From assembly GCA_025786725.1 (NCBI GenBank), contig JAHLTZ010000051.1, forward strand, positions 1-64,000: a stretch of 64,000 nucleotides of DNA. Direction: 5' to 3'. Under the pieces are notes generated by a model. It was not told the origin of the DNA, searched no databases, and saw only the letters and a program-made list of their open reading frames with translations. The position numbers were made by a program, and so were the translations under genes. The stretch's first letter is position 1. Every line of letters starts with the position of its first letter. Source of the stretch: Syncephalis fuscata S228. Its lineage: Eukaryota; Fungi; Zoopagomycota. Below, one piece after another: positions 1-57,255 of this stretch.

Positions 1-1172
1 GTGTTACAATATAATAAACGTATTTTATTCATTATAGTTTGCAATGCAATCTACGCATTCCATTTATTGTGTTATGCGTATATAGGTTTAACACCACTTT
101 TTATATTTTATATTCTTTCTATTATATATCACTCTATACACATTCTGCTTTTCTCTATCCAAAAATGTTTTTAGTTTTATTTTAGCTTTGGTGTTACTAA
201 ATCCCAACTCATTTCTTTAAATTTGCTTATGCATATATACACAATAGCTTCACCGCTATTCATGTTTTGATCAGTATGTATTCGTCCTGTTGTACAACAT
301 CTTATTATATAGCAATCGAGTATTATTCAGATCCAATAGCTATGTATCGTTGGTTTTATTAATATTAAGCCTCAATTCATTTAATTCACCTGTTCATACA
401 TCTATGCATACCAAGTGATAAATTTATAATAATAAGTATTCTGATAAGCAATATAACTTACTACTTAGCTTTATGCTCAATAAAATAAATGCCTAATTCG
501 ATTGCGCAATACTATCAGATGTATTCATTTGAATCCCAGATTATACTTGGTTAATTAATTTCCTATAAAAACAAAGTGTATAATAATACGTACAATTAAA
601 CAGCAACAAGTGTTACAAGTTTGCAATTGCCATATAGTATATAATGCCACTTGTGTAGACGAACTGAATGTATTTATTATGTAACAGTTTTTGTACTAGT
701 CAAGTGATTATATATTTGTATAAAGTAATACAGTGATTTCTAGTTGTTGTAAATCTAATGAACAATATTGATTGGGTGTAAATATTAATATTCACTAGTA
801 TGTTACTTATAATAAATGATATATTAATTTAAATCGATTAGTAGTTTAGAAATGGCGTTGTTGTATCTTGTTGCCTAAATAGCTATTGTCTAAACATTAG
901 TATTGGTATTCATTTGTAGTAAATTTTAATAATTATAAACTGATTTATTGGTGCAAAACCTATAAAACAAAATAAAACAAAATGTGATTCGGCAAAAGTG
1001 GCTAGCCCACCAAAAAGACAAGTGGCTACTGTTCCCAGTCCCTGTCAAGTTCTATAATTGAACAACAGAGCCCGGTGTACAGTGCCGCTTGTCTGCTGGT
1101 CCCGCCTTATGGCAATGATGCCTAAATTAGTATTAGTATTGCTCTATTTAATTTATATTCTACTTACTTTGC

Positions 1173-1775
1173 CTATGCTTCTTCTTCGTCGCCATCAAAA
1201 GTCACTGTGATAATTCGTAGCCCTGGTGCAACTACTTCTTCGAGTTCTTCTCTCTCGACCGGCTCCTCCTCGGCCACATCCGCCTGTTTCTTCTCGTCAT
1301 CGCTAGCACTAACTGGTACTTTCTCGCTAGCGCGGTGCACAAGACTGCGGCGCGACTTTGGAGCAGCTACTTTTCGAACCGCTTCATCCTCGCTTGATCT
1401 TGCCTCTGCAGCTTGGGGCGTGCTGGTGTACTCAACACCTTCCATTGGCATTGCCTTGTTGGCAGCACCGCTGGGCGAGCAATAGTGCGACTCGAAAGTA
1501 AAGGCATTGGCTGTTTTAACATCTTCCATTGGAGCTGCATCGCTGACAGTCCAATTTGACGAGTGGTAATTTACAAAGAAGTTAAAGACAGGCGTGGCAA
1601 AGGATGGTGCAGACGAAGCAAGTATTGGCCGCGATATCAGCTTCGTCACACGGACCTTTTTCAAGGTCGTCTTGCAGCCTTGCATCATATACGCCTCAGA
1701 GAATGTGCGTTTACGATTATGCATAGGCTGCTTGGCAGTTTGAGAACTACCGCGCGTATGGAATGGAGTAGCCAT
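1173..1775 (-). CDS. Hypothetical 200-aa protein with acidic, probably disordered C-terminus (left-arm copy)
   Basis: GC-rich ATG-initiated ORF in AT-rich flanks; no family recognised; mirror copy at 27799..28401. Confidence 0.6.
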   Translation of the reverse strand: MATPFHTRGSSQTAKQPMHNRKRTFSEAYMMQGCKTTLKKVRVTKLISRPILASSAPSFATPVFNFFVNYHSSNWTVSDAAPMEDVKTANAFTFESHYCSPSGAANKAMPMEGVEYTSTPQAAEARSSEDEAVRKVAAPKSRRSLVHRASEKVPVSASDDEKKQADVAEEEPVEREELEEVVAPGLRIITVTFDGDEEEA

Positions 1776-4079
1776 AATAAACTACTTTTGCTGTAGCAAA
1801 TGCACAACATGCAATTAACACCATTTAAACAATATACAAAACGCAAGCTCTGCCACAGTACAACAAGCCGAACTATCCGTTCAAGTGGATGAATGGTAAT
1901 ACGTAAGTGCTAAGGATGCATTGCGCAGCCAAACAAACAAATATGCACAACGCAAAGTGCTACGCAACAAACCAACTTGGCACAGAAACTATAGTATCAT
2001 TCACTATCCAGTGCAAACGCAACTACAAAACGCAACACTTGCTTACTTTTAAGATACTTTGTAAACTATAATAATGTAGTGAGTGAGTAAACGAAGTTGT
2101 GGAAGAAAATAAACAGAAAGCGTTATAGAGCACTACAGATTGATCTTGCGCGGCTTTTACACAGTAAATAACTAAACTATTTTACATTTATACCTAGTAG
2201 TTTGTATTGTCGTTTGTTTGTATTGGGTATTTGTATATACAACATGTAGTATCACTAGCGTCTTGTGCAGCTCAATACGATCTCACTAGCCAAAACAGGC
2301 CTGCATCGGAAATGAATATCAAATGGTCTGTGTACGCCTTGCTAAACCGGTAAATAGTCCGATGAACTGGATGGCGTGGTCACAACAACAAATAGGCACA
2401 TAGCACGTGATCTTGTGTTTACTTTTCATAAATACGCCACCACCATGACTATCGTGTAATAATAACGCGTGTACACGACTGAAACAATAACAAATCATTT
2501 ATACAATACATGTAGCTGCAATAACATATAATGGTATTTATTCAAGCCACTTGTATATATTCCAATATTCATAATATACGGTTTATTTCTATTTATACGA
2601 TTGCTTCATTACTTATTTGGCTGATTTATATTCCAGTATATCTGTATCTTTTAGCAACCATAAATAATGTCAATGCTTTATACAGCACGTTTATATTGAA
2701 ACTTGGATTTAAAGGTGATTTGTTGATAGGTGCGTTGTAATCACCGTAGTCTTGTTATTGATGCAGATACATATCAGTTAGCTTATTGTAGCCAGCTCAC
2801 CACTACAACAGTTTGCAATAGCTTGTTGTTTTGCAGTATCAATAGCTGATAGCTTTTGTTATATTTAACATACATGCATAAATGTGTATAGCAATGTGCT
2901 TAGTATATATGGTTGTAATTTATTTACTATACTAGATACAAGAGCAAATAAATGATCGCTAAAACAATGACGTATATAAGATACTTGTGCCTGTAGTTAT
3001 ATTCAACGGTATTAAAATATCATTTGTAACTAATTTAAATGTTGTGATATAGATCAAAAACTGCCTGAGTGTTAGTAAATTATTGGCACTTTAATTATTT
3101 CTAGGCAGTTAAACGTTTATGCATTTAAATTGAGCAATGTCATATAAAACAGCAAATACACTCAGTATTTCAAGTGACAAAATATATTTACAATTGACTG
3201 GTAACGTATCATAGATAATATATTTTTATTGATCTATTAATATTGTAGCTATATGCAAGAATGGCAGCTAGTTGATCATCATTGTATTTTACACACTGAT
3301 AGTTACATCACGGCACGTTCAGTAATGTCTATAATCTTGTTGTTATTATATCTATCTTTGTACCAATGTTCAAGTAGCTGTAAAGCATATTATATTTATT
3401 ATAGAATAAACAATATGCATTATATATTTGCTCAGTATCATTCTTATAGTCATGATCTTGCTGAAAGTGTATGAATAGCCATGTCAAAGTCATAGCGCAT
3501 ATAACTTAGTGGATAAAATGAGCAGAATAAACTAAAATTTACGACTAATAAAGCTGAAAATAAAGAAATAATAGTTTTGAATATAGCATAGCTACTATAT
3601 GATAAAATAAAATAAACTAAAGTGACTATTTAATGAAAAAATGTAAATGGCGGTGTTAAATCTACTGAGCATATATCCACGAGTAAATGAGTTGAAATGA
3701 GCCGATCCTCATTAATAATGAAGCTAGAACAAACGTAAATATGGTTTTGGATTGAAGAAGGCTAGGCGAGTATAAAATGCTATGTAAAATGATAAATGTA
3801 CGGCAAGAAAGTATATAAAACAATGTTAACATTATAGTGCATAAAATGTAATGAGTGAAATAAATGAAGCGTGTTAGTGTGTATAAACGATAAAATGTGT
3901 CTAGTATGTTATAAAATGATATATAGTCGTGAGGAATAGAATAGGAATGATACATGTGTACTGAGTATATGCATATGAGATAATAAATCTATGATGATGA
4001 GTATGTGCTGATTGATGTCACTCGCCACCCATCATTATGTTCAATAGAGCGATTGTCTATCTCAACTGCTTGAATGTAT

Positions 4080-5210
4080 TAAATTTAATTATTTGACTTT
4101 AAATCACATTCAATGGCTTAATAGCTTGTTTATTATCAGTGTAATAACAATAGCAGAAACAACTAGTATTATTATTAAATGGGAAAATGTCTGTATTTAT
4201 ATGAATGCAACTAATAGTAGTATGTTAATAGATAAGCAGTGCTATATTTATTTATTTAAACAAAGGAATACATAAATAATGATATACTAATACAAACCAG
4301 ATGACTATACAGCATATTGTGGCCCTGTTCTTGCCAAATCCAAATATCTCTTAAATCTATATCTATTGAAGAGGGTCAGTAAACGAGATGAGCCACATGT
4401 GCCAATGATGTTTGCTGCTTGACTACACCGCAATAAGTAGTAGTTGTTCAAACAACATTTGCTCCGCACCATCAGATATCAGATATCTTCAAGCGCAAAT
4501 CTTATGTTGCCTCAACAGCCAGATACTCAGCAAGGCAACCTCGCAAACAAACACATGGTAGGCGTACCAATGTTACTATACAAAAGACCAATCAACTATG
4601 TGCAGAAAAGCACCTTCTACAACATGTTGGAGTACCTACTGCGTGATATGTAGCTTCTAGAACACTACATATCCAGTGCTCCATAGCCAAAAGGCGCAAC
4701 TGTATCGCACCTCACACGCCCGTTTACCGACCTTAGTACATATAACAGCAACCAGCAGCGATCTTGTGATCATTGACGTCTAGCGAGTGTAAAGCATATC
4801 GAGCAACAAATGGCAGTAAGGTGCAGATCAAATGTTGTTTGAACAACTACTACTTATTGCGGTGTAGTCAAGCAGCAAACATCATTGGCACATGTGGCTC
4901 ATCTCGTTTACTGACCCTCTTCAATAGATATAGATTTAAGAGATATTTGGATTTGGCAAGAACAGGGCCACAATATGCTGTATAGTCATCTGGTTTGTAT
5001 TAGTATATCATTATTTATGTATTCCTTTGTTTAAATAAATAAATATAGCACTGCTTATCTATTAACATACTACTATTAGTTGCATTCATATAAATACAGA
5101 CATTTTCCCATTTAATAATAATACTAGTTGTTTCTGCTATTGTTATTACACTAATAATAAACAAGCTATTAAGCCATTGAATGTGATTTAAAGTCAAATA
5201 ATTAAATTTA
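4080..5210. repeat. Nested foldback: ~380-bp inverted arms around a ~370-bp GC-richer spacer
   Basis: 4080-4460 is the reverse complement of 4829-5210; the same 60-aa ORF appears at 4093..4275(+) and 5015..5197(-). Confidence 0.92.
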
Positions 5211-5388
5211 GGGCAAATTGGAAAAATACAATGTTTTTTAAATTATTTATTAATAAAATCATTCTCTATTTGCTTTACATTTCGTTTCTTGTAACTTTAA
5301 TGACACGTCTTTTTTATAGCCGTTTCATTAGTAATTTGTAGTTGCTATTCAATAAAGGTGCTTGTTTCAACATTATTAATTCTAGCGT

Positions 5389-7040
5389 TTACAGTGTATG
5401 TTCTTGTATTGTGTCCTTTGAGCTACAATTACGACAAGCATATCGTTGCGAGGCTTCCAAAGCTTCACCACAAGATCTGATTCTTTTAACTCTTGGTCTA
5501 CCGGCTTTTTTCGTTATTTTCGGTGGCAAACACAAAATATCTGCGGTAATTGATTCTATTTCAACCGGACAAATATATGAAACAGATAATTTGCTTAAAT
5601 AATCAATGGTGTAAGATTTATCAATAAAATTATTTAATAAAAGCTTAAGATTCTTCAAAATTATTGCTACATGACTACAAATAAGCTTTATTTCTTCCCA
5701 GTACCCATACGTGCAGGTTTTTTAGTTAAATATATTGTTCTGACAATACCGGGCTTAGTATCTTTAACTTAAAATTTGGTATCCAAATAATTGTCAACTA
5801 TATAATTATTGGCGTCAGTTAACGTTGAATTATACAACAATCGGGTATTATTAGATAACAATTCTTGAGCTTGTGGATACTTAATCCTACGGCTATTTAA
5901 TAAAGTTCCAACTTTAATGACAAATCCAGTGAAAAACTGATAATGGGATTTGTTCCAAGGATCATTCATCCACGAGTTCAATGGTTCTGATGAATCTAAA
6001 CTCAACCGAATCTTGGCTATTTAAAAAACAATCTAGCCCAGTTTTTTGCTGAGTTTATTAGATTGTTATAGGCTGGCTCATTTAATGACCGTATCATTTT
6101 CATTAAATCTAGAAAATAAATTAGTACTTTGAATGTAATTTAAATAAATATAAATAGCAGCAACCTCTTTACTAGTTAAAGCTTTGTTTTAAATTCAGCA
6201 TTTGTTTTTTCGATATGAGCAATGCATGCAGAGTGGCGCGCCAAGAGAAATACAATTTTTACCAAAGAATGTATTTTTTTATTTCTGTCGCTAACAATAG
6301 CTTGGTTTTTTCTTTTAATTCAAGTATCAAATCTAATAAATGTTTAAAAAAATAAACCCAGTTGTTTTTATTTCATGAGATATTATAGCACCAACCAAAG
6401 GAAAAATATTGTTATTTCCATATTTAACAACTGCAGCAAGAGTAACACCGTTATAAGAATATCTTAAATGGCAGCTATCAATTACCAGTACTTTACGAGT
6501 ATACTGGTAAGCTTTGATAAATGCCAAATGACATAAAAATGTTCTTTCAAAATTACCAGACTAGTTTTGCAAAAAGTGCTGAACAGAGTCAGTATTAAAG
6601 TGTTTGAATTTGACAAGGTAATCTTTAATAATAAATAGCTGATATAATTGTTAGTGTATATTAAATAATTAAATATGTACTTAATACTTTCACTTGTGCA
6701 TCTTTTAATTTCATATTTGAAAGTGTAGTAACATCATTTGTAATGGACTTAATAATAAATTTAATAGTATTATTGCCAAATCATATGAACAACCATTAAA
6801 ATGTTTAATATTGCACTGGATAATCTTTATTAGGCCAGTTTTCTGCTTTCTGGCAGTCAAAATAAACTGATATTTGTTGCTGTAACGGTCTTTATGAGGA
6901 CAAATAAGCTGCAATCTTGTTGAATCACTATTTTCCTATTAAAATCACAGCCGCTAACAAGCTTAAACTCGTCAACAGCGGCTCTCAGTTTTTAATACTG
7001 TTAAATATAGCTTTTTTAGATAGTTTAGTAGATATTTGGC
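5389..7040 (-). pseudogene. Decayed MULE/MuDR transposase
   Basis: Mirror of 22540-24187: MULE-domain fragment VLVIDSCHLRYSYNGVTLAAVVKYGNNNIFPLVGAII, SWIM relic, PP..K..GRP..KR and Zn-knuckle relic; many stops and frameshifts. Confidence 0.85.
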
Positions 7041-7664
7041 AGATTTATTTATTAAATAAATTAATAAAATTAATTTAGCGACTGTCTATTTTCTAATTTT
7101 CCAATTTTATACTACATTAAATAATTATTTATATATTTACAAATGTACACTATAATATCTACTATTAAATAAATGTATTCATTTATACTTTACCTAACGT
7201 TGTATATTCATTTTGCATTATTTGTTTTTATCATATAATATTACACTCAGTATCTGTATAAATATATCGATAGTAAATACTGCCATATTTATACATGTTC
7301 ATCATGTTATGTTATATTATAACAATACGCTTTCTTTCGTATAGCTGTTTCATTAGTAATTTGTATTTACTCTTCAATAAAACGTTTATTCGACATCAAC
7401 TACTGTTTCAATACTATTAGTACTAATCCTTACAGAGCATATTTTGTATTGCGTTTTTGAGTTGTATTTACCACAAGTAGATGTATACGATGACCAGTTG
7501 ACGGCGTGAAAATTAGTCTCGACGCGTCTAACACGCGTTGCAGTAGGACAGCTGGCAGCGCTCGAAAGTCGTATAAAACAATGAAGAAACGCTAGAACGT
7601 AAGGCATATGGACAAAAAGTAGAGAATTCGAATTAGAAATTGTAGTGTTATTTCTAAACGATCT

Positions 7665-10524
7665 TTACTCTGAGATGGAGACGAATTTGATCAGCTTTTT
7701 CAATTTGACCATATCGTCCTTGTTTTCTGCGATGCCCTCGAAAAAAAATCGTCCAGGTTTGAAAGGTCTATATACACCATTACATCCTCAATACCAGTCG
7801 CAGGTCCTTTTTGACATAGTAACTGGATTACCGTCTGGACGCCAGGGAATTCGAGATGGATGCGGAGGATGCCCTGAGGTTGGACGAAGTACCCGAAGCC
7901 TCAAAGTCATGTCGAATGTCTGCCAGTGATTGAATCACGTTGGCACGACTCTGTTTCAAAAAGCAACTTCGAATATTGCTGGAAGTTTCGTTTGATTCGT
8001 GGGTGGACTGCTTCAGACGGTCGCTGCGGAGCTTGATCGCAAGAGAGCCGGCGTAACGTTTGTCAGAAAAAAACCAGACTCCGTCCGGACATGTGCCATT
8101 ATTGACAATAAGCATTATTCGGAGACATTCGTGAGGAAGCGAGATCTGCACGGACACCACTGTCGTGTATCCAAATCCGTTGGCTGTGTTAATCTCATCA
8201 ATTTGGAGCTGGAAATTGTTGCACCAGGCGGCAATGTGACGCCTTGAAGAAAAGGAAGACAACAAGACGGTAGCCATTGAAGCGTTGAAGTGATTGACGA
8301 ACAAGTGCCCCAACGCATCTCTTTTGAAGCTGAAGTGATGCCAAAGTTGTGACAACCTGGTACATCTGATTTAGGTGCTCCAAGAACACCGGATTCTTGT
8401 CTGAAGCCTTTAGCTCTTCCTGCACTGTCTCAACAACTATTGGCTCGTCCATGACCAAGTGAATGTTACCGTAATGTAATCGTAGTTTGCACAGAGCCTT
8501 GTCCACAAAGTCAAACTGGCCCTTGCTCAAGAAGGATACTTTGCCACCGTGAAGATGATAGGCCATTGCCATTCGAGAGAGAAGCCGAGTTGTTTCGCCT
8601 GTTTGATCGTTGTCAAGAATGATGCGTATCTCAGTCCGAAGACCACTCATCGTATACTCAATCGACTTGTCAATAGCGTGCTCCAAAGTAGCTTGTTTAG
8701 AGTCTTGAAAAGTGCAAGATGCGGCGAGACGATTGATGACGTCAATGGAAAATTGAGGTCGTCCTGTTAGCATGCGGAGTTTGGCAGGCGGAATTTCACA
8801 GCCTGACATGTCGATTAGATCCGAATATAGCCTGCTCACATCGCCTTCATCAAAGCTCGGAAAGTTCTTTATCCTCAAAAAATTGGTTTGTTTGGCGATG
8901 TTTGAGTGCACACTGTCGACATTTTGCAATGAGACTGCTGTGCCTAGTATCACCTGCGTCGCCTGCATAATGCTCAGAGCACCTGATAAAAGCGTAAAAA
9001 AGCTGCGGCGAAATCGGGGTTGTATCTGGTTCTTGTCGTCAAAGAGATTATTTCTGTTATAGGTGAAAGCGGCCGGCGAGATGAGCTTGCCGGATAAGAT
9101 GTCAGTCACCGCAACCTGAGCTTCATCCAGAGCAATTACCATTCCAATTTTTTTGGAAGATAAATGGAACTGAAGCTTGGTTTGGACTTTATTAAGCATG
9201 GCTTGGATTGTGTAGTTGTCGTATTTCCGCAGCTTGCTAACTAGCTCGCCGATAGTCAAGTTACCTGCAGTAATCTGCTCATGGAAGAACTGCTGCGGCT
9301 TTAAATCAGGGTTGTTTTCCAGGAGATACTGAAGGAAGAGCATTCGTGCAAGGAATTCGAGCTTGACGCGTTCTACCACTCGTGATTTTACTTCGGAATC
9401 AATGTCCTGTGGCCCGTACCAACTTCCCTGATTCCTGTTAACAATGGTCCAGTAGATGTCCTCGACATCCTCTGCAAGCGTGATAAAGTTTGGGTCCTTA
9501 AAACCCGGAGAGATGGTCGGACTTGATATACAACAGACACAATAAATGACAAAGTGCTTGTTTGCAAGGTCAATGATTGTCGCAGTCTTTCCTGAACCGG
9601 ACGGAGCAACCATGGCTACTACGTGCTCCCCATAGTATACGCCGATATCGTCCTCGACAATTTCACAAAGAGTCTTGCCATAATTGGTGCTTGCCTGCTT
9701 GTCCAGCGCAAGTCCCAGCATCACTAGACTTATATCCGTTGCTGTTTTGTGATGTGGTAGAGTCCTCTTGTAAAAAGGTCCTAGTCTACTTCTTTGCGAT
9801 GCTTCAACATCCTTTGGATCGACAGGGCGGGTGAAATGATGGTTGAGGCCTTGGAAAATAATTTTCAATTCCTTCTCAATGTGATTATATGGAACAGACG
9901 TCTGCTGGATAAATGTTGCTACATGATCAAAAAAGGTAATTAAAAATAACGTTAGGTAATCAGCACAAGGTTACACAAGTGAGTATTTAGAAAAGGTTTA
10001 ATTATACCCACTAGGATGTAATCAATTTGAAAAATGGTCAGAAAGCGAAGTAGAGGCACGAGAGAGGACGGACACATGGATTATATCGGAGTAATGGGAA
10101 GATGAATTAAATATTAGCACTGCATACTTAGATGTAAAGCAAGGGTGAACGGCAGAGAAAGGAATTATATTGACTGCTGGTTTTTAGAGCAAAACTACTT
10201 ACCAGGCTTGGGTGGCGTTACAACGATCAGCGGGTTGTCGTAGCCGTTTTCTTCTATAAGCTCGCTGAGTTCCTCGCTTAACTTGATAGCTTTTCCCGGA
10301 TCGCCGGCGTCAGCCTCATTCTTGTAGACTTGGAGTTCGGACGAGTCCACGCCCACCAGCCTGTTTCTGAAAGCGACATCGGTGATAAGTATTTTGCGAA
10401 GGTCAGCAACATTGAGTTTTCGGCTGGAGATCTTGCTCTCGACTAGGACTTTACCAATGCCTAGCTTTGCAAATCGTGAACTGTTCGGTGCAGCTTGAAG
10501 AAGCTTGACCCAGACCGCCGACAT
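7665..10524 (-). CDS. Crinkler (CRN)-family effector, left-arm copy; 3' part frameshifted (pseudogene or consensus errors)
   Basis: Exon 1 10524-10203, exon 2 9918-7665. Matches the intact copy down to ~8360, then carries many small deletions. Confidence 0.85.
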
Positions 10525-11260
10525 CACTTCAGGTGCTGCTGAGACTGGTTGATCTTGATCTGCAACAAAAAGAAAGTAACAAGGTTACAGACAATGGCAA
10601 GGTCAGGTAGTAGTAGAGTAAGAACGAGAAGGCCGAGAAAGAGAAAGCAAGTAAAAGATAGATAAAAGAGAGAGCGACAGAGTCACGTAGACTCATGATG
10701 CGCCAGCTTGACAGCAATGACAGGTAAAGAGGCATGTGAGACATGGAATGGCTCATAGTTCCCTCTTTGACGCCCTGCAGATGTCACAATAGGTGCAGAG
10801 CAGATAGAAGGTATATGAGGCGGAGAGAACATGTGTCTATTGCTGCCGGGATAAGCTTATCTTGGATTGTACAAGACGCTCTTTTAGTGCGCTTCGTGGT
10901 CCTTTTGGAAGGCATTGTGCAGAATTAATAGAAAGATGCTAACAGTACCAAACATACTAGCGGAATTGAAGAGACCAACGGGAGTGAGGATGAGGTGCGG
11001 TGACAGAAGCTGACAGCGTGTGAATGAGGAACAGAATTTGACAGCGTGCGAAGGTGGATGAGACGAGAAACGGAAAGAGGAAAGAGCTGCGCGTGACGAA
11101 ACGCGACATGATCTTGTCGACTGGACCGCCCAATGCTCTTTTTGTTCGGTTTTATTGCAGCACGCCTCATATCACTATAGTTTATTACAGATAATATCAG
11201 TTAGTAGTTCTTTATTTCTATTATACCATTAAACAATTTATTACCTATTTAACATAACTT

Positions 11261-12527
11261 GGGGGTCAAATGACTATTTTAATAACATTCGCGCAATCGA
11301 ACTGCACATTCAATCTATTGAACATGGGGCCAAGTGGTGAGTTTATTTAATCATTACATCATCACATTTATTGTTTTTTGGTGGTCAAATGACTAAAATT
11401 TAATAACATCCAATCTATTAAACATGATGATGGGTGGTGAGTGACATCAGGGCCCAAAATACTCATCAATGTAGATTTATTATCCAGTATGCATATATTC
11501 AGTACACATATATACTCTATTTACCTATATCATTCCCAGCCTGTCCCATACTACTATATAGCATTCTACGATATATTAAATACATTTTATTGTTTATATG
11601 CGGCAATATACTTCACTCATCCCACTCATTACATTTTATACACTATAACTTTAAAATTGTTTTATATGCTATCTTACCGTACATTTATTATTTTATATGT
11701 CATTCTATACTCGCATAGCCATCCTCTATCCAAAAATGTTTTACCTTTGTTTTAGATTTATTATTAACAAATGTCGACTAATTCCGTTCATTGATCATGC
11801 ATATAACTCACTAGATTCAACATAGCTAATTGTCATTTTACACTGTATATTCTTTATATTGTATATCAGTTTATTGTCTAGTAACTATGCGCTGGCTATT
11901 ACCGTTGCCTGTTTGGTTCTAGCACTGTTATTAAAAAATGTCGACTAATGTTGGTCATCTGCTCATGCATATATGCTCAATAACTAGAACATTGCTAATC
12001 TCGCTCAATGTTGCATATTCAGTATAATGTTTATCATTTTATTATATATTGGCTATATGCTGTCTATAGCCGTTGTCGGTATAGTTTTAACTTTTTTATT
12101 AATAAAAATTAACATATCGCACTTAGTTTGTTCAATGGGTTATATTGATAGAACAAACAACATGAATATGAACGGAGTTATGTTTTATTGAAATTATTTA
12201 TAAATAAACTAGATCATGTCAACTAGTCATGTATTAATGTTAATCAAGCAAAGTGACGGGTATACATAGCAATAACACATACGGTGATGATATATGCATA
12301 CTGGATAATGAATCTATGATGATGGGTATTTTGGACCTTGATGTCACTCACTACCCATCATCATGTTCAATAAATTAAATGTTATTAAATTTAGTTATGT
12401 GGCCATTAAATTATAATATAATTACTAATTTGATCATTAATAGAACTCGCCATTTGCCCCATGCTCAATAAAACGCAAATGCAGCTCAACTACGCGAATG
12501 TTATTAAAATAGTCATTTAATTTCCAA
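11261..12527. mobile_element. Non-autonomous MITE/foldback-like repeat with ~240-bp diverged inverted ends (GGGGTCAAATGACT... family)
   Basis: 11261-11500 is an imperfect inverted match to 12290-12527. The terminal motif GGGTCAAATGACTATTTTAATAACATTCGCG recurs across the window. Confidence 0.65.
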
Positions 12528-12989
12528 ATAAAATAGTTAAATAAATTGCTGCAAATAGAAAGAATAGGAATAGGCCAGTTATTATCAAAAAAATGATTAG
12601 TAGACCGCTATATGGTCCTAGTATTTTATACTAAACACTACTAGTTAATTATAATGGTTATATAACAAATAATCTCCGTTAGCATCATTATAATTCTAAT
12701 TTAAGAAGACATGGAACACTAGCCGTTTATTAAATTGAATCTATCTATCTATTTATACAAGTTATATTTAAAGTTGTTTTGTTATGGTTAATAAAGAAAA
12801 AAGGTCAAGCAATTAGACGTCTGTATATTAATATTTAAGCATTTGGTCGGGTTAAATTCCCTAAAGCTTTATTTAGAAAGAGAATTGTACAAATATAGTA
12901 AACATCTGAGCTTGAGTTTATCGCTGTTTGCGTGCAGTAGATTCTTCTTCTTCTCTGCGTCGTTGCATGTCTGCTGGGCTAAATGCTTA

Positions 12990-46665: not shown

Positions 46666-47139
46666 CTATTTAAACTCTCCACAGGCTAATACACAAATAC
46701 ATCCACAACCAGTGGGACAGTCTGCGTTGCCTTGTTTAAACATTCTTGTATATGATGTTGATGGCCACCATGCTGATAAACTAGACAAACATTTACAAGT
46801 CCTTTATTATCATTAATCACTATACTCGTTCTGTTCCGCTATTATAATTTATAAATAGTAGCTTACCTCGTACAGTGATATGACACAGGGCACATTCAAT
46901 ACCTTTTCTATAGCGTTTACGCTGCTCGCAAAAGCTTTGGGATAATAATGGCGTACGACATTCAGGACAATAGCCGCCAAAGTCTACCAAATATCATATG
47001 GATAAATAACAGTTTATTTAATTTATATAAACGCAAATCACTTAATTGACGTCGTTCATCAAATCAGTAGCATGTACACGTTTAATAGCATTAAAGCTAG
47101 CAAACTTTAATATTTCAGATCTTTGTTTATTTAAACACT
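46666..47139 (-). pseudogene. WDR59/SEA3 3' fragment, P2 right arm
   Basis: Reverse complement of 43238-43711. Confidence 0.8.
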
Positions 47140-49599
47140 TAAGCATTTAGCCCAGCAGACATGCAACGACGCAGAGAAGAAGAAGAATCTACTGCACGCA
47201 AACAGCGATAAACTCAAGCTCAGATGTTTACTATATCTGTACAATTCTCTTTCTAAATAAAGCTTTAGGGAATTTAACCCGACCAAATGCTTAAATATTA
47301 ATATACAGACGTCTAATTGCTTGACCTTTTTTCTTTATTAACCATAACAAAACAACTTTAAATATAACTTGTATAAATAGATAGATAGATTCAATTTAAT
47401 AAACGGCTAGTGTTCCATGTCTTCTTAAATTAGAATTATAATGATGCTAACGGAGATTATTTGTTATATAACCATTATAATTAACTAGTAGTGTTTAGTA
47501 TAAAATACTAGGACCATATAGCGGTCTACTAATTAATTATTTGATAATAACTGGTCTATTCCTATTCTTTCTATTTGCAGCAATTTATTTAACTATTTTA
47601 TTTGGAAATTAAATGACTATTTTAATAACATTCGCGTAGTTGAGCTGCATTTGCGTTTTATTGAGCATGGGGCAAATGGCGAGTTCTATTAATGATCAAA
47701 TTAGTAATTATATTATAATTTAATGGCCACATAACTAAATTTAATAACATTTAATTTATTGAACATGATGATGGGTGGTGAGTGACATCAAGGTCCAAAA
47801 TACCCATCATCATAGATTCATTATCCAGTATGCATATATCATCACCGTATGTGTTATTGCTATGTATACCCGTCACTTTGCTTGATTAACATTAATTCAT
47901 GACTAGTTGACATGATCTAGTTTATTTATAAATAATTTCAATAAAACAACTCCGTTCATATTCATGTTGTTTGTTCTATCAATACAAATCGGTGAACAAA
48001 CTAAGTGCAATATGTTAATTTTTGTTAATAAAAAAGTTAAAACTATACCGACAGCGGCTATAGAAAGCGTATAGCCAATATATAATAAAATGATAAACAT
48101 TATACTGAATATGCAACATTGAGCGAGATTAGCAATGTTCTAGTTATTGAGCATATATGCATGAGCAGATGACCAACATTAGTCGACATTTTTTAATAAC
48201 AGTGCTAGAACCAAACAGGCAACGGTAATAGCCAGCGCATAGTTACTAGACAATAAACTGATATACAATATAAAGAATATACAGTGTAAAATGACAATTA
48301 GCTATGTTGAATCTAGTGAGTTATATGCATGATCAATGAACGGAATTAGTCGACATTTGTTAATAATAAATCTAAAACAAAGGTAAAACATTTTTGGATA
48401 GAGGATGGCTATGCGAGTATAGAATGACATATAAAATAATAAATGTACGGTAAGATAGCATATAAAACAATTTTAAAGTTATAGTGTATAAAATGTAATG
48501 AGTGGGATGAGTGAAGTATATTGCCGCATATAAACAATAAAATGTATTTAATATATCGTAGAATGCTATATAGTAGTATGGGACAGGCTGGGAACGATAT
48601 AGGTAAATAGAGTATATATGTGTACTGAATATATGCATACTGGATAATAAATCTACATTGATGAGTATTTTGGACCCTGATGTCACTCACCACCCATCAT
48701 CATGTTCAATAGATAGGATGTTATTAAATTTTAGTCATTTGACCACCAAAAAACAATAAATGTGATGATGTAATGATTAAATAAACTCACCACTTGGCCC
48801 CATGTTCAATAGATTGAATGTGCAGTTCGATTGCGCGAATGTTATTAAAATAGTCATTTGACCCCCAAGTTATGTTAAATAGGTAATAAATTGTTTAATG
48901 GTATAATAGAAATAAAGAACTACTAACTGATATTATCTGTAATAAACTATAGTGATATGAGGCGTGCTGCAATAAAACCGAACAAAAAGAGCATTGGGCG
49001 GTCCAGTCGACAAGATCATGTCGCGTTTCGTCACGCGCAGCTCTTTCCTCTTTCCGTTTCTCGTCTCATCCACCTTCGCACGCTGTCAAATTCTGTCCCT
49101 CATTCACACGCTGTCAGCTTCTGTCACCGCACCTCATCCTCACTCCCGTTGGTCTCTTCAATTCCGCTAGTATGTTTGGTACTGTTAGCATCTTTCTATT
49201 AATTCTGCACAATGCCTTCCAAAGGACCACGAAGCGCACTAAAAGAGGTCTTGTACAATCCAAGATAAGCTTATCCCGGCAGCAATAGACACATGTTTCT
49301 CCGCATCATATACCTTCTATCTGCTCTGCACCTATTGTGACATCTGCAGGGCGTCAAAGAGGGAACTATGAGCCATTCCATGTCTCACATGCCTCTTTAC
49401 CTGTCATTGCTGTCAAGCTGGCGCATCATGAGTCTACGTGACTCTGTCGCTCTCTCTTTTATCTATCTTTTACTTGCTTTCTCTTTCTCGGCCTTCTCGT
49501 TCTTACTCTACTACTACCTGACCTTGCCATTGTCTGTAACCTTGTTACTTTCTTTTTGTTGCAGATCAAGATCAACCAGTCTCAGCAGCACCTGAAGTG

Positions 49600-52465
49600 A
49601 TGTCGGCGGTCTGGGTCAAGCTTCTTCAAGCTGCACCGAACAGTTCACGATTTGCAAAGCTAGGCATTGGTAAAGTCCTAGTCGAGAGCAAGATCTCCAG
49701 CCGAAAACTCAATGTTGCTGACCTTCGCAAAACACTTATCACCAATGTTGCTTTCAGAAACAAGCTGGTGGGCATGGGCTCGTCCGAACTCCAAGTCTAC
49801 AAGAATGAGGCTGACGCCGGCGATCCGGGAAAAGCTATCAAGTTAAGCAAGAAACTCAGCGAGCTTATAGAAGAAAACGGCTACGACAACCCGCTAATCG
49901 TTGTAACGCCACCCAAGCCTGGTAAGTAGTTTTGCTCTAAAGACCAGCAGTCAATATAATTCCTTTCTCTGCTGTTCCCCTTGCTTTACATCTAAGTATG
50001 TAGTGCTAATATTTAATTCATCTTCCCATTACTCCGATATAATCCATGTGTCTGTCCTCTCTCGTGCCTCTACTTCGCTTTCTGACCATTTTTCAGATTG
50101 ATTACGTCCTAGTGAATATAATTAACCTTTTCTAAATACTCACTTGTGTAACCTTGTACTGATTACCTAACGTTATTTTTTATTACCTTTTTTGATCATG
50201 TAGCAACATTTATCCAGCAGACGTCTGTTCCGTATGATCACATTGAGAAGGAATTGAGAATTATTTTCCAAGGCCTCAACCATCATTTCACCCGCCCTGT
50301 CGATCCAAAGGATGTTGAAGCTTCGCAAAGAAGTATACTAGGACCCTTTTACAAAAAAAGTCTACCATATCGCCAAACAGCAACAAATATAAGTCTAGTG
50401 ATGTTAGGAATTAAATTGAACAAGCAAGCAAGCGACAGTAATGGCAAGACTCTTCGTTCAATTGTCGAGAACGACATCGGAAAATTGAGTAATTATTGTA
50501 CAGTGGCCATGGTTGCCCCGTCCGCTTCAGGAAAGACTGCAACAGTCATTGACCTTGCAAGCAAGCATTTTGTCATTTATTGTGTCTGTTGCATACCGAA
50601 TTTAATCGCTGCGGAGTTTATGGACCAAAACTTTATTACGCTTGTAGAGGATGTCGAGGAAATATACTGGGCCATTGTTAACAGGAATCAGGGAAGTTGG
50701 TACGGGCCACAGGACATTGATTCCGAAGTAAAATCACGAGTGGTAGAACGCGTCAAGCTCGAATTCCTTGCACGAATGCTCTTCCTTCAGTATCTCCTGG
50801 AAAACAACCCTGATTTAAAGCCGCAGCAGTTCTTCCATGAGCAGATTACTGCAGGTAGCTTGACTATCGGCGAGCTAGTTAGCAAGCTGCGGAAATACGA
50901 CAACTACACAATCCAAGCCATGCTTAATAAAGTCCAAACCAAGCTTCGGTCCCATTTATCTTCCAAAAAACTTGGAATGGTAATTGCTCTGGATGAAGCT
51001 CAGGTTGCGGTGACTAGGATCTTATCCAATAAGCTTATTTCTCCGTCCGCTTTGATCAAGAACAAAGATACCCTTTTTGATGACAAGAATCAAATACAAC
51101 CTCGCTTCCGCCGCGGCTTTCTTACGCTTTTATCAGCTACTCTGCGCAATATGCAGGCGACACTGGTAATACTAGGCACAGCAACCTCATTGCAGGATAC
51201 CGAACATGTGTACTCGGCCATCGCCAAACAAACCAATTTTTTGAGGATAACGAACTTTCCGAGCTTCGATGAAGGCGATGTGAGCAGGCTATACTCGGAT
51301 CTAATCGACATGTCAGGCTGTGAAATTCCGCCTGCCAAACTCCGCCTGCTAACAGGACGACCTCGATTTTCCATTTTCGTCATCAACCGTCTCGCCGCGT
51401 TTCGCGCTTTTCAAGACTCTAAACAAGCTACTTTGGAGCACGCTATTTACAAGTCGATTGAGTATACGATGAGTGGTCTTCGGGCCATGATACACACCAT
51501 TCTTGACAACGATCGAACAGGCGAGGCAACTCGGCTTCTCTCTCGGATGGTAATGGCTTATCATCTTCACGGTGGCAAAGTATCCTTCTTGAGCAAGGGC
51601 CAGTTTGACTTTGTGGACAAGGCTCTGTGCAAACTACGATCACATTACGGTACATTCACTTGGTCATGGACGAGCCAATAGTTGTTGAGACAGTGCAGGA
51701 AGAGCTAAAGGCTTAGACAATAATCCGGTGTTCTTGGAGCACCTAAATCAGATGTACCAGGTTGTCACCAACTTTGGCATCACTTCAGCTTCAAAAAGAG
51801 ATGCGTTGGGGCCACTTGTTCGTCAATCACTTCAACGCTTCAATGGCTACCGTCTTGTTGGTCTTCCTTTTCTTCAAGGCGTCACATTGCCCGCCTGGTG
51901 CAACAATCTCCAGCTCCAAATTGATGAGATTAACACTGCCAACGGATTTGGATACACCGACAGTGGTGTCCGTGCAGATCTCGCCTTCCTCACCGAATGT
52001 CCTCCGAATAAGATGCTTATTGCAATAATGGCACATGTCCGGACGGAGTCTGGTTTTTTTCTGACAAACGTTACGCCGGCTCTCTTGCGATCAAGCTCCG
52101 CAGCGACCGTCTGAAGCAGTCCACCCACGAATCAAACGAAACTTCCAGCAATATTCGAAGTTGCTTTTTGAAACAGAGTCGTGCCAACGTGATTCAATCA
52201 CTGGCAGACATTCGACATGACTTTGAGGCTTCGGGTACTCCGTCCAACCTCAGGGGCATCCTCCGCATCCATCTTGATTCCCTGGCGTCCGGACGGTAAT
52301 CCAGTTACCTATATCAAAAAGGACCCTGCGACTGGTATTGAGGATGTAATGGTGTATATAGACCTTTCGAATCTGGACGATTTTTTTTTCGAGGGCATCG
52401 CAGAAAACAAGGACGATATGGTCAAATTGAAAAAGCTGATCAAATTCGTCTCCATCTCAGAGTAA
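49600..52465 (+). CDS. Crinkler (CRN)-family effector, third diverged/mosaic copy with frameshifts
   Basis: Same two-exon structure; Walker A variant APSASGKT; single-base deletions near 51651, 51714, 52023 and 52272-52292. Confidence 0.85.
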
Positions 52466-53104
52466 AGATCGTTTAGAAATAACACTACAATTTCTAATTC
52501 GAATTCTCTACTTTTTTGTCCATATGCCTTACGTTCTAGCGTTTCTTCATTGTTTTATACGACTTTCGAGCGCTGCCAGCTGTCCTACTGCAACGCGTGT
52601 TAGACGCGTCGAGACTAATTTTTCACGCCGTCAACTGGTCATCGTATACATCCTACTTGTGGTAAATACAACTCAAAAAACGCAATACAAAAATATGCTC
52701 TGTAAGGATTAGTACTAATAGTATTGAAACAGTAGTTGATGTCGAAATAAACGTTTTATTGAAGAGTAAATACAAATTACTAATGAAACAGCTATACGAA
52801 AAGAAAGCGTATTGTTATAAATAATAACATAACATGATGAACATGTATAAATATGGCAGTATTTACTATCGATATATTTATACAGATACTGAGTGTAATA
52901 TTATATGATAAAAACAAATAATGAAAAATGAATATACAACGTTAGGTAAAAGTATAAATGAATACATTTATTTAATAGTAGATATTATAGTGTACATTTG
53001 TAAATATATAAATAATTATTTAATGTAGTATAAAATTGGAAAATTAGAAAAATAGACAGTCGCTAAATTTAATTTTATTAATTTTATTTAATAAATAAAA
53101 TCTG

Positions 53105-54758
53105 CCAAATATCTACTAAACTATCTAAAAAAGCTATATTTAACAGTATTAAAAAACTGAGAGCCGCTGTTGACGAGTTTAAGCTTGTTAGCGGCTGTGA
53201 TTTTAATAGGAAAAATAGTGATTCAACAAGATTGCAGCTTATTTGTCCTCATAAAGACCGTTACAGCAACAAATATCAGTTTATTTTGACTGCCAGAAAG
53301 CAGAAAACTGGCCTAATAAAGATTATCCAGTGCAATATTAAACATTTTAATGGTTGTTCATATGATTTGGCAATAATACTATTAAATTTATTATTAAGTC
53401 CATTACAAATGATGTTACTACACTTTCAAATATGAAATTAAAAGATGCACAAGTGAAAGTATTAAGTACATATTTAATTATTTAATATACACTAACAATT
53501 ATATCAGCTATTTATTTATTAAAGATTACCTTGTCAAATTCAAACACTTTAATACTGACTCTGTTCAGCACTTTTTGCAAAACTAGTCTGGTAATTTTGA
53601 AAGAACATTTTTATGTCATTTGGCATTTATCAAAGCTTACCAGTATACTCGTAAAGTACTGGTAATTGATAGCTGCCATTTAAGATATTCTTATAACGGT
53701 GTTACTCTTGCTGCAGTTGTTAAATATGGAAATAACAATATTTTTCCTTTGGTTGGTGCTATAATATCTCATGAAATAAAAACAACTGGGTTTATTTTTT
53801 TAAACATTTATTAGATTTGATACTTGAATTAAAAGAAAAAACCAAGCTATTGTTAGCGACAGAAATAAAAAAATACATTCTTTGGTAAAAATTGTATTTC
53901 TCTTGGCGCGCCACTCTGCATGCATTGCTCATATCGAAAAAACAAATGCTGAATTTAAAACAAAGCTTTAACTAGTAAAGAGGTTGCTGCTATTTATATT
54001 TATTTAAATTACATTCAAAGTACTAATTTATTTTCTAGATTTAATGAAAATGATACGGTCATTAAATGAGCCAGCCTATAACAATCTAATAAACTCAGCA
54101 AAAAACTGGGCTAGATTGTTTTTTAAATAGCCAAGATTCGGTTGAGTTTAGATTCATCAGAACCATTGAACTCGTGGATGAATGATCCTTGGAACAAATC
54201 CCATTATCAGTTTTTCACTGGATTTGTCATTAAAGTTGGAACTTTATTAAATAGCCGTAGGATTAAGTATCCACAAGCTCAAGAATTGTTATCTAATAAT
54301 ACCCGATTGTTGTATAATTCAACGTTAACTGACGCCAATAATTATATAGTTGACAATTATTTGGATACCAAATTTTAAGTTAAAGATACTAAGTCCGGTA
54401 TTGTCAGAACAGTATATTTAACTAAAAAACCTGCACGTATGGGTACTGGGAAAAAATAAAGCTTGTTTGTAGTCATGTAGCAATAATTTTGAAGAATCTT
54501 AAGCTTTTATTAAATAATTTTATTGATAAATCTTACACCATTGATTATTTAAGCAAATTATCTGTTTCATATATTTGTCCGGTTGAAATAGAATCAATTA
54601 CCGCAGATATTTTGTGTTTGCCACCGAAAATAACGAAAAAAGCCGGTAGACCAAGAGTTAAAAGAATCAGATCTTGTGGTGAAGCTTTGGAAGCCTCGCA
54701 ACGATATGCTTGTCGTAATTGTAGCTCAAAGGACACAATACAAGAACATACACTGTAA
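53105..54758 (+). pseudogene. Decayed MULE/MuDR transposase, third copy
   Basis: Same fragments as 22540-24187. Confidence 0.85.
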
Positions 54759-55424
54759 ACGCTAGAATTAATAATGTTGAAACAAGCACCTTTATTGAAT
54801 AGCAACTACAAATTACTAATGAAACGGCTATAAAAAAGAAGACAAGTCATTAAAGAATGTTTAATTTGTAATGAACGCCATTAGAAAAAACAAAGTGTGG
54901 AGCAAATAGAGAATGATTTTATTAATTAATAAATTTAATGAATTTTTAAAAAGAATTTATATGATAAAATTAGAAACAATGTATGGCAAAGACTGCATAT
55001 GAATAAATTGCAGACGCTTCGGGCTTTTCTAAAGAATTGTTCCAAATATGCATATGGCGGCTCGAGGGCAAGGGGGATTAAATAAGGCGTCGGCCACCAA
55101 TGGCCTTCAGAGTCCATAAGAATATGGCGTGGAGAGGCGAAAGCCGTCCTGGAGATTGTAAGTAATACGTACGCAAATGTACCAAGAAAAAGCAGGCGTG
55201 CTTGTTGGATATTGAAACAAGCGGGAAAATAAGAAATGGTAATTGATTTTTGTACAGCTGATGAAATAATGTATTGTATTCATAAATGCTACATAGCAAC
55301 GGAAGCTGGCAAAAAGGGGGAGACGAGAACTCAACCTAAAGCGACGACCAGGAGTATATTTGGAAAATCTATGTTGAAAGTTGGAAGTTGCGTAAGAGTT
55401 GTGTGTCCCAGGAAAGAGTGCACT

Positions 55425-56080
55425 TTATCCATCTTGGTGGAAGTGCAATTCGTTCAGTTCATTGTCCACCAAATTTAATTTTTTTAATTTTGCGCAGTTA
55501 TCAAATTCAGCTCAAATAAGGTTACATTCTTGGGCATAAGCTTCTTTTAGTCTAGTCAAATTAAAGCAAAACAGCTGTTCTATCATATCCATATAACAAT
55601 ATAGCTTTTCTAGATTGGGAAAGTCTTTAACATTCAAAGCTCTAAGGTTATTGTTATTACAATAAAAAGTTTTCAATCCTTTGCAATTGGCTATCTCTAA
55701 CTCTTTTAACCAATTAAAAAAAACATAGATGCGCTCTAATTTGGAAAAATTATTGAGTTTCAATGCTTCAATCTCGTTGTTGCAGCCTTGGATATTGACT
55801 AGATTAGGGCAATTCTCAATGATGACACCACTCAATCCGCAGCCATCAAATTTAACAACCTTTAAGTTGGGACAATTTTTGATGACTAGTGTTTTGCCCT
55901 TTCATCCTTTATCATTGTCGTCCAAGCATATACAGTCTCCCTCTTATCCATCAGATTCATTTTGAACAGCCTTTATGTTTTGATACTGCTCTTCTATTTA
56001 TACTACATTTCTCTTTTGGTTCTTAATGATATCAGTAACCTCTTTCAAATAAGCTTCATAAGACCTGCGAACTTCGCCGG
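55425..56080 (-). pseudogene. Decayed intronless leucine-rich-repeat gene
   Basis: Repeats NCPNLVNIQGCNNEIEAL, NCKGLKTFYCNNNNLRAL, DFPNLEKLYC; the pattern continues in frame past TGA codons at 55904 and 55514; in-frame TAA codons upstream. Confidence 0.8.
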
Positions 56081-57255
56081 AGATACTACTATCTCTTCAA
56101 ATACCTTTCTAACTTTTTTGTAAATTTCGTTTTGTTCTACAATAATAATTGGTGATATGATACATAATCGTGAGCAATAGAAAGAGAGAGCAAATTGTCA
56201 ACCAACGCTCTATCTATAATATAGTTTTAGCATAAAACTGATGCTGCAGTACCAAGAATGTGCGAAAACCGACAGCCATGCCTAAAGTTAACACTGTAAG
56301 GCGAATATTGACTCATTAAAACAGCGTGGAACGGAAAAAGAGCCAGAATGAAATGCTCGAAACTTGATTCTTGAACAATGTTAAATGTTCACTTTGTCTG
56401 GTTTTATTGCAGTGCGCCTCATATTATTAAAATACAGTAACAAGTATAAACATATGTAAATGTATAGAATATGAATAGAAATAATTTACATACTTTCTAT
56501 TATTAGTAAAATCTAACTAGTTATATGGCAGTTCTCCATGTAGGCAAAAAATAGCATTTGAAATATGACAAAAAGTGTATAATTTAGTGTGGGAAAATTA
56601 GAAAATTATAGTTACCAAATATGGTAATGGCACAAGTAAAAAACAGCTATTACAACTACACTCTGCAACCTGGCGCTTTAAATAATAAGCGTATACTATC
56701 CATTGGCTTTTTAGTACTTTTATTCAATAAAATATGGTGCTCAACACCAGTTTAAACAAAAAATGTCTTTTATCGTTTCAGTCTTATTAACATTTGTGTA
56801 ACACTTTGGAGTACTTGCCTCATCACGCCATTGGACGCACAGTCGGTCCAGTGCATTTTTCTTTTGCCGTCGCAGCTAGAGGGTAGCACAGCAGATTTTT
56901 TGGCTATTGCTCATCAACGACCAATGGCAATACGACGATGTTTAGTAGAATGGGCAATAGAGATATGGCATTCTCATTGGGGCGATAGATAAAATATGAA
57001 GATCATCTAGAAAAAAAACGGTGTATGTATCACATATTGTCTTGCCCACGTTGTTCCAACTGAACAAGAATAGAAGCACTTTTGCTACTAGTACCGCTTT
57101 TCCATTTTTCGCACGAACTCTCTATTTAACCGACGTGCTCGTGACCCCACGACCGTTGCAACGTTCGTTTCAACTTTTCCTATTGACACTCGTTTGCTAT
57201 TGTAGTTCACACATACTACTGCTCTACTCCTCCATTACTACTACGCCTGACTCCT

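Follow-up and report, generated by a model that had tools for sequence, protein, structure and literature searches.

Palindromes at a fold-back repeat in the transposon-rich surroundings of Crinkler-like genes in Syncephalis fuscata

Overview of the locus

The best reading of the locus described here is a fold-back inverted duplication inside a transposon island. The Crinkler-like genes have transposon-rich surroundings in which a resident fold-back repeat makes the DNA prone to palindrome formation; taken whole, with a fold-back event at the larger palindrome included, this explanation has about an even chance of being correct. A dedicated effector-copying device, as proposed in a sequence-only reading of the same DNA, is not favoured. 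The structure looks like the outcome of ordinary inverted-repeat instability or assembly error, and the doubling of a Crinkler-like gene is a by-product of inverted-repeat instability, with no dedicated or mobile amplification unit involved. The window begins contig C319 of the Syncephalis fuscata assembly and covers its first 64 kb (G000:C319:1-64000). The sequence described earlier is found in the assembly, and alignment places two palindromes, P1 and P2, and a direct duplication beyond chance. The region is repeat-rich and belongs to a mycoparasitic fungus.

Palindromes P1 and P2

The palindromes are composed of the following parts:
8-14684, minus strand: P1 left arm, mirror of 14863-29566, reaching the first bases (about 5-8) of the contig
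14685-14862, plus strand: P1 loop, 178 nt
14863-29566, plus strand: P1 right arm, running on into the unique flank A from about 29711
41509-44924, minus strand: P2 left arm, 3416 nt, with its outer end exactly at the outer terminus of a MITE-A copy and unique DNA leftward
44925-45452, plus strand: P2 spacer, consisting of an extra U unit of about 334 nt (44930-45263), the 178-nt loop (45266-45443) and 9 nt
45453-48868, plus strand: P2 right arm, next to which comes the Crinkler-like module

The earlier description of two palindromes about one loop in the same orientation is correct in that both are present and the 178-nt loop of P2 is oriented as in P1, but the arms of P2 are separated by 528 nt (the additional unit of about 334 nt plus the loop), more than the loop alone. 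The P2 arms (41512-44924 against 48865-45453) differ by 3 mismatches. This palindrome is internal to the contig, with unique flanks on both sides, and is probably real. Its mirror stops after 3.4 kb, as previously stated; the flanks past 41509 and 48868 are unrelated, which excludes the interpretation of the arm boundary as a gene-conversion edge in a longer old repeat.

Over 14.7 kb, the arms of P1 (8-14684 against 29566-14863) are 99.4% identical; 40 mismatches and 46 gap openings separate them. The innermost stretch of about 230 nt (14457-14684 and 14863-15090) is an older, diverged inverted repeat that includes one 100-nt patch of about 75% identity; outward of it, the arms are identical over 6.1 kb. 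The diverged inner patch is private to the left unit of P1, so that a simple U1/U2 unequal crossover is excluded as its source. The left arm has no flank of its own in the contig and ends at the contig start, and thus the 14.7 kb marks a limit of the assembly rather than a biological boundary, and the length of P1 is undefined. Accordingly, the reported 14.7-kb mirror with a Crinkler-like gene and a neighbouring gene exists as assembled, but its length is set by the contig start and the neighbour lies inside a transposable element (TE-C, see below).

P1 and P2 are linked by a direct duplication of about 10 kb (14378-24339 against 44960-54938, 97% identity). A segment of about 13 kb comprising a fold-back element with 3.4-kb arms, a Crinkler-like gene and a 1.9-kb repeat was duplicated locally, yielding P1 and P2 30.6 kb apart. 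The arms evolve in concert: at 31 sites, the two P1 arms agree with each other and differ from the two concordant P2 arms, with 0 side-specific sites, and all private variants are common to both arms within each palindrome.

The fold-back repeat family

The core of both palindromes is a member of a fold-back repeat family with inverted units of about 334 nt around the 178-nt loop, which has 137 matches at no fewer than 40 loci (40 of the 128 candidate loci were scored). Outside P1 and P2, 24 of the 27 loci examined have their own inverted arms centred on the loop (0.28-0.93 kb, usually 0.3-0.9 kb); two of the other three lack inverted arms and one is shortened to 50 nt by the contig start. The expectation that spacer matches elsewhere are palindrome centres is therefore borne out for the most part, but not their association with effectors: no Crinkler match is detectable on the contigs of the four closest core copies (two in C343, one each in C33 and C172). 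At four paralogous core copies, perfect arms extend over 0.35, 0.74, 3.4 and at least 14.7 kb. A search of the short copies for diverged sequence prolonging their arms found none.

Foldback (FB) transposable elements have long inverted arms of tandem subrepeats and are variable in length. The S. fuscata family resembles them in its U units, arranged in tandem and inverted around the loop, in its variable arm length, conserved central spacer and dozens of dispersed copies, and in that the arms within one copy are more alike than separate copies. Unlike FB elements, it has no linked transposase, and at 21 loci no common outer termini or target-site duplications are seen, the arms ending at differing sequences without flanking direct repeats; the marks of a mobile element are missing at these loci. 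Also unlike FB elements, close subfamily copies have common flanks on one side only, as after segmental duplication.

Other repeats in the arms

The P1 arms had been assumed to be a single element, but at least six unrelated repeats make up their mosaic. The major components are:
17020-18289, plus strand: MITE-A, 1.27 kb with inverted ends of about 240 nt, many copies at 78-85% identity; further copies in the mirror (11259-12528) and in P2 (about 41509-42780 and 47600-48868)
22542-24281, plus strand: 1.9-kb dispersed repeat (the "MULE relic" of the earlier description), at least 7 copies at 82-85%
24367-25497: MITE-B, a fold-back MITE of 1.13 kb (arms of 391 nt) with more than 35 copies at 91-94%; both P1 arms contain it (left, 4080-5210), P2 does not
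25476-29710, plus strand: TE-C, 4.2 kb, with a terminal repeat of the same type as MITE-A; its mirror copy (1-4100) is truncated where the contig begins, at the inner edge of the high-copy terminal repeat
18376-18400 and 48955-48979 (plus strand), 11148-11172 and 56400-56424 (minus strand): the 25-nt motif taken for a terminal inverted repeat (TIR)

The 200-aa "neighbouring gene" (27799-28401) is located within TE-C. The 1.9-kb repeat, MITE-B and TE-C form independent families, all of which also have copies at loci without Crinkler-like genes. The MULE label of the 1.9-kb repeat is not confirmed by Pfam, with no family matching the candidate ORFs even at E<=1; the resemblance to MULEs is by eye only.

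The TIR element that was thought to carry the Crinkler-like gene likewise does not hold up. The paired motif is a 46-nt inverted match of 80% identity in P2 only, and P1 has the left copy alone. Elsewhere in the genome, the 25-nt motif occurs as single copies, with which Crinkler-like 5' units begin, and no target duplication is seen at the TIR ends. A 7.5-kb "cargo transposon" (48957-56424) is excluded by the absence of its right end from P1, the single motif elsewhere and the missing target duplication; neither of the features of a MULE or Pack-MULE-like cargo transposon, paired termini with target-site duplications and a transposase or its relic, is found.

The Crinkler-like genes

All three Crinkler-like copies that were reported within 52 kb have been located:
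19021-21899, plus strand: right-arm copy, with a header exon (19021-19347) and an intact 739-aa ORF containing a P-loop (GSGKT)
7668-10524, minus strand: left-arm copy, public gene model BDF19DRAFT_417138 (P0001)
49600-52465, plus strand: third copy, in the P2 module, with an open frame that stops early, at 51681

Compared with the left-arm gene model, the third copy has 95% DNA identity and 69% protein identity. The exons of BDF19DRAFT_417138 skirt one-base gaps, of which the left-arm copy as assembled contains many. The C-terminal module has 116 homologues, most of the full-length ones with PF20147; its 740 aa show 59-69% identity to the best homologues, which are Mortierellaceae proteins with PF20147, so that a C-terminal homology to CRN proteins is evident. 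Neither P0001 nor the header ORF has a Pfam match at E<=0.01, and a homologue, P0002, matches PF20147 at E=1.6e-28. The header aligns with those of the homologues at the profile level only (hhalign probability 94.7%, E=5.8e-8, partly from the linker).

Crinklers (CRN or Crinkler-RHS-type; PF20147) are modular proteins with an N-terminal header and variable C-terminal enzymatic domains. The S. fuscata proteins are similar in having a putative header followed by an HVLVxxP-like motif (LIVVTPP), a P-loop NTPase motif, the C-terminal homology and a dispersed family, whose paralogues share a common 5' unit, with homology beginning at the 25-nt motif. They differ in that the header is below Pfam significance and that they come from a mycoparasite rather than an oomycete.

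Origin of P1

The evidence leans, by a little, towards P1 being real and having arisen by a recent fold-back inverted duplication. A break would have occurred to the left of the fold-back element, the inverted repeat would have snapped back, with fill-in synthesis following, and the whole right side (Crinkler-like gene, MITE-B and TE-C) would have been copied into a second, inverted arm, whose outer end might have been healed by recombination in the transposon terminal repeat beside flank B (compare C156). The diverged older inverted repeat at the palindrome centres could be the seed, in agreement with the earlier suggestion that the core could prime folding, and P1 is centred on such a pre-existing inverted repeat with its spacer.

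Work in yeast shows that natural inverted repeats near a double-strand break prime fold-back inversions, which secondary rearrangements between repeats then stabilise (PMC7467729, PMC10622511). P1 is like these Saccharomyces cerevisiae inversions in its inverted-repeat centre with the spacer retained, in the near-identical arms that run outward from the seed and in the outer end that appears to be healed in a dispersed repeat (the C156 junction). Unlike them, P1 would be fixed and natural, in a wild fungus, and is known from an assembly; its seed is an element with 3.4-kb arms rather than a short repeat, and its intermediates (break, hairpin-capped end, dicentric) are inferred only. If real, P1 is a natural, fixed example, with a clear seed and an outer junction apparently healed in a transposon repeat, of an event hitherto dissected mainly in yeast mutants and cancers, and it doubles a Crinkler-like gene in a mycoparasite; this would be of moderate interest for research on genome instability and effector compartments.

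The outer junction is suggested by contig C156, which contains the end of MITE-B and TE-C followed by flank B, the junction lying 17 nt inside the TE-C terminus. In C326 and C265, only 139 nt of the TE-C terminal repeat adjoin flank B, and C156 thus reads as a recombinant within the repeat. By inference, C156 can be linked to the P1 left arm. A 115-aa ORF in flank B has no relatives on record.

Variants between the arms indicate separate source molecules. The right arm is derived at 6 substitutions and 3 indels for which the left arm has the state of the P2 paralogue; of 10 distal variant sites, the left arm matches haplotig C249 at 5, and the other 5 are private to the left arm (neither right arm nor C249). 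The P2-paralogue states and the agreement with C249 set the left arm apart, so it is not copied from the same molecules as the right arm. A missed adapter or a single-molecule fold-back read as the sole cause of P1 is excluded, since the arms differ by real variants.

There is an appreciable, if less than even, chance that the outer 11 kb of the left arm arose as an artefact of the assembly or the library and that the true locus is P2-like, with a 7-kb fold-back element and a different left flank. Reads of the second haplotype of the right side could have been placed in reverse by the assembler, or through a few chimeric reads that arose by snap-back at the natural 3.4-kb inverted repeat, for instance after whole-genome amplification. 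Palindromic long reads can be artefacts of DNA amplification (PMC6218980); literature searches turned up no sequencing method for the S. fuscata genome. As in such reads and contig ends, P1 lies at a contig terminus and one of its arms has a locally poor consensus. The palindrome reaches the first base of the contig, where a high-copy terminal repeat has its inner edge, and the left arm contains the following patch:
6629-8348: 1.7 kb in which 33 one-base gaps appear on comparison with the right arm and with the P2 copy

This patch, the signature of a poorly supported, unpolished consensus, points to very weak read support and sits where the variant-bearing outer left arm meets the inner part identical to the right arm. 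Half of the distal left-arm variants are those of C249, a haplotig that confirms the junction of the right arm with flank A and continues into flank A in right-arm orientation. No other haplotig for 14863-25402 was found among the assembly contigs, and the real variants of the left arm could stem from a second right-arm haplotype. C156 sides with the right arm, unlike the left arm, at all 10 distal sites, and the contigs around the locus are redundant and tangled, with breaks at repeats and overlaps among them.

Against the artefact stand the 5 private distal variants and C156 itself, a real second copy of the arm end on a non-A flank in an independent contig, which would be superfluous. No contig in the assembly was found to end in the fold-back arm with another flank. 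Unlike missed-adapter chimeras, P1 retains the natural repeat and loop at its centre, and its arms differ by more than sequencing errors, the left-arm substitutions being common to the P2 paralogue or C249. P2 and the many short palindromes demonstrate that such structures are genuinely present in the genome. Were P1 an artefact, the public assembly and gene model BDF19DRAFT_417138 would be affected, and the many other palindromes of this genome would need read-level checks ahead of biological interpretation.

Effector amplification

Whether P1 is real or not, the proposal of an effector-amplification system of a new kind fails. It is very unlikely that the fold-back centre is an active in vivo seed that repeatedly mirrors its flank and raises the number of Crinkler-like toxin genes against host fungi under selection; arms of 0.35, 0.74, 3.4 and at least 14.7 kb would then be successive outcomes, and "portable" would refer, within the same joint proposal, to the dispersal of core-plus-CRN units. 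Recurrent mirroring is not apparent, as the only mirrored Crinkler-like copy found in the assembly is that of P1, a palindrome with a left arm that assembly may have produced.

Comparably unlikely, and largely refuted already, is a dedicated portable unit in which a self-folding core and a TIR cargo element move and mirror-duplicate Crinkler effector loci: despite the three copies in 52 kb and the paralogue homology that starts at the 25-nt motif, the complete module (core, Crinkler-like gene and relic) is found only in this contig, as two adjacent segmental duplicates, the closest core copies lack Crinkler-like matches on their contigs, termini and target duplications are not shared, the right "TIR" is confined to P2, and the relic, MITE-B and TE-C are separate families that also reside at non-Crinkler loci. 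In favour of an association, four more loci (C305, C361, C97 and C223) have a fold-back centre no more than 6 kb from Crinkler-like sequence, above the roughly 0.2-0.6 expected from copy density. The arrangement differs among the four (C305, C361 and C97 were judged from match coordinates), and only C305 has the order and orientation of the window.

Palindromes and repeat composition of the window

Self-comparison of the window reveals two palindromes, P1 and P2, each with a left and a right arm flanking a central loop, together with a direct duplication, as the sequence-only reading had described; the large mirror of P1 is present as assembled only. In P1, positions 8-14684 match 29566-14863 with 99.4% identity over 14.7 kb (40 mismatches and 46 gap openings), and in P2, positions 41512-44924 match 48865-45453 with 3 mismatches. 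The direct duplication repeats 14378-24339 at 44960-54938 (97% identity). The P1 loop (14685-14862; 178 nt) has an identically oriented counterpart in P2 (45266-45443), where the perfect arms are separated by 528 nt because an extra unit of ~334 nt (44930-45263) intervenes between left arm and loop. P2 is internal to the contig and has unique flanks.

Parts of the P1 right arm, listed outward from the loop
15200-16555: low-copy stretch, the innermost of the listed parts
16545-17267: dispersed repeat
17020-18289: MITE-A
18376 to about 22000: Crinkler-like unit
22542-24281: 1.9-kb dispersed repeat
24367-25497 (mirror 4080-5210): MITE-B, a fold-back MITE of 1.13 kb with >35 copies at 91-94% identity
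25476-29710: TE-C (4.2 kb), with a terminal repeat of the same type as MITE-A, containing the 200-aa "neighbouring gene"

MITE-B consists of 391-nt arms and a 349-nt loop; contigs C156 and C249 of the same assembly both start at one shared base inside this element. The P2 arms end at the exact outer terminus of MITE-A, and the homology between P1 and P2 stops at the MITE-B position of P1; thus, the "module" is a local mosaic of repeat families that are independent of one another. The terminal repeat (~110-240 nt, core GTCAAATGACTA..TTTAATAACAT) occurs in TE-C, in MITE-A and at a very large number of other loci, and a solo fragment of it is located just left of the P2 left arm. The repeat island is followed on its right by an ordinary proline dehydrogenase exon (58722-59411; Pfam PF01619, E=1.4e-48).

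Terminal repeat copies in the window
29570-29710
25476-25630
18050-18289
41398-41511

A genome-wide family of fold-back elements

The loop and the inner repeat belong to a genome-wide family with 137 matches and at least 40 loci (40 of 128 candidates scored). With P1 and P2 left out, a palindrome is centred on the loop in 24 of the 27 fetched loci; the inverted repeat was not found in two, and one more is cut by its contig start. The arms of the 24 palindromic loci are 0.28-0.93 kb long, mostly 94-100% identical and, in places, composed of tandem ~334-nt units. This architecture matches that of Foldback-type elements but the hallmarks of mobility are missing: neither shared arm ends nor target-site duplications were detected, and the arms end at different sequences in every locus compared. 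P2 and the fold-back family are genuine and belong to a known kind of feature.

Four close copies of the core (95-98% identity) are located on C343 (two), C33 and C172; the latter two look like alternative versions of the C343 copies. These copies have perfect arms of only 0.35-0.74 kb and share 0.66-1.36 kb of the window arm sequence one-sidedly, and no Crinkler-like sequence was found on the three contigs. The copies at C172:2617-3236 and C343:35966-36133 are otherwise 94-99% identical but differ by one perfect inverted U unit, so that the number of U units in the arms is polymorphic. The start of C343 (1-5360) is a copy of positions 62016-67366 of C319, the contig that includes the window, with 98.8% and then 91.9% identity (compared with window positions 62016-64000 and a second fetched locus, L050). 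C343 carries two more copies of this subfamily and ends in flank B, the flank that follows TE-C on C156; if C343, C156 and C319 are neighbours, the subfamily has four copies within about 110 kb. Many members of the family are found no more than 5 kb from a contig start (C132, C183, C240, C97, C351, C55, C172, C80, C312, C230 and C223); either contigs tend to break there or the copies occupy short repeat contigs.

The Crinkler-like gene and its surroundings

Crinkler-like copies in the window
19021-21899: P1 right arm
7668-10524: P1 left arm
49600-52465: P2

The right-arm copy combines a header exon with an intact 739-aa frame containing a P-loop motif; it is not among the proteins returned by the search. 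It is the left-arm copy that underlies the public gene model, BDF19DRAFT_417138, whose exon breaks avoid one-base gaps resembling consensus errors. This model shows 59% identity to its best relative and 69% protein identity to the P2 copy, the open frame of which ends early. The relatives are proteins of Mortierellaceae and other Mucoromycota, most of them with a Pfam Crinkler header. The S. fuscata header itself has no Pfam match; in a profile-level alignment with the headers of the relatives, it scores a probability of 94.7% (E=5.8e-8), to which the linker contributes in part. Together, the headers of the relatives and this alignment make the label "Crinkler-like" fair. All 115 source-named relatives outside S. 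fuscata are from Mucoromycota, chiefly Mortierellaceae, with identity reaching 59-69%, and no other Zoopagomycota match appeared in the homologue search. Syncephalis fuscata is a parasite of other fungi, and Mucoromycota include hosts of Syncephalis. Host-parasite transfer of the gene is possible; alternatively, the database might simply be thin for Zoopagomycota.

The proposed transposon carrying this gene does not hold up. The inverted match of the supposed TIR (46 nt, 80% identity) is present in P2 only, and P1 has only the left copy. The 25-nt core of this motif occurs nine times in the whole genome, singly everywhere apart from the window and C259, the haplotig of P2. It opens Crinkler-like 5' units at C90, C97 and C113, and no such unit was found near the copy at C350:438281. 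The motif was rejected as a pair of transposon ends; it marks where a repeated Crinkler-like 5' unit begins. Pfam detected no MULE domain in the putative MULE relic. An LRR fragment (LRR_4, E=2.3e-8; 55512-55832, minus strand) was confirmed in the interval that separates the P2 module from the inverted 25-nt motif.

At four loci, on C305, C361, C97 and C223, a fold-back centre has a Crinkler-like sequence no more than 6 kb away, a number above the 0.2-0.6 expected from copy density, although two of these loci, those on C97 and C361, may be one and the same. The association is explained by repeats clustering in the same compartments. Order and orientation vary among these loci, and none of the four contains a mirrored gene. 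A portable system for effector amplification is not supported.

Is the large mirror of P1 real?

The window comprises the initial 64 kb of C319 (112,796 bp) in an assembly of 29.36 Mb and 371 contigs. The P1 left arm stops at the first bases of C319, so that the assembly determines how long it is; the contig start is equivalent to right-arm position 29569, the inner edge of a ~130-nt, very-high-copy terminal repeat. We lean slightly towards a real left arm. For six substitutions and three indels, this arm retains the P2 paralogue's state and the right arm is derived, and five distal variants occur in the left arm alone; therefore, the two arms were built from different molecules. Furthermore, C156 contains the MITE-B end and the complete TE-C, followed by flank B, with the junction 17 nt inside the TE-C terminus, which is the outer junction that a real left arm would need. 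On C326 and C265, flank B is preceded by only 139 nt of the TE-C terminal repeat, so C156 looks like the product of recombination inside this repeat. P2, with its internal position and unique flanks, and the short palindromes demonstrate that such structures exist in this genome.

An assembly artefact, to which we give a substantial but less than even chance, would fit the end of the arm at the contig terminus and the 33 one-base gaps at 6629-8348 of the left arm that are absent from the right arm and the P2 copy. Only two substitutions accompany these gaps, a pattern of errors rather than of mutations, which indicates very thin support at the join between the variant-bearing outer part and the inner part that is identical to the right arm. 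Moreover, the left arm agrees at 5 of the 10 distal variant sites with the haplotig C249, which runs in the right-arm orientation into flank A (the unique DNA from about 29711); C156 has the right-arm, not the left-arm, state at all 10; and the stretch 14863-25402 has no other haplotig among the matches.

History and possible mechanism

In the 3.2 kb of arm that the two palindromes have in common, P1 and P2 differ at 31 sites; at all 31, both arms of each palindrome agree, with no side-specific sites. Two readings fit: the two arms of each palindrome have been homogenised, or both palindromes were mirrored only once the duplication had occurred. P1 and P2 diverge by about 1-3%, and the outer arms of P1 differ from each other by about 0.2%, which suggests a likely order of events: the fold-back element was duplicated locally together with the Crinkler-like gene, MITE-B and TE-C then inserted at P1, and the P1 mirror formed last. 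The mechanism that we favour for this mirror, and of which we infer all steps in P1, is fold-back inversion: a break would be followed by snap-back of the resident inverted repeat and fill-in synthesis, and healing would occur through repeat-mediated recombination. Fold-back inversion has been demonstrated in yeast (PMC7467729, PMC10622511).
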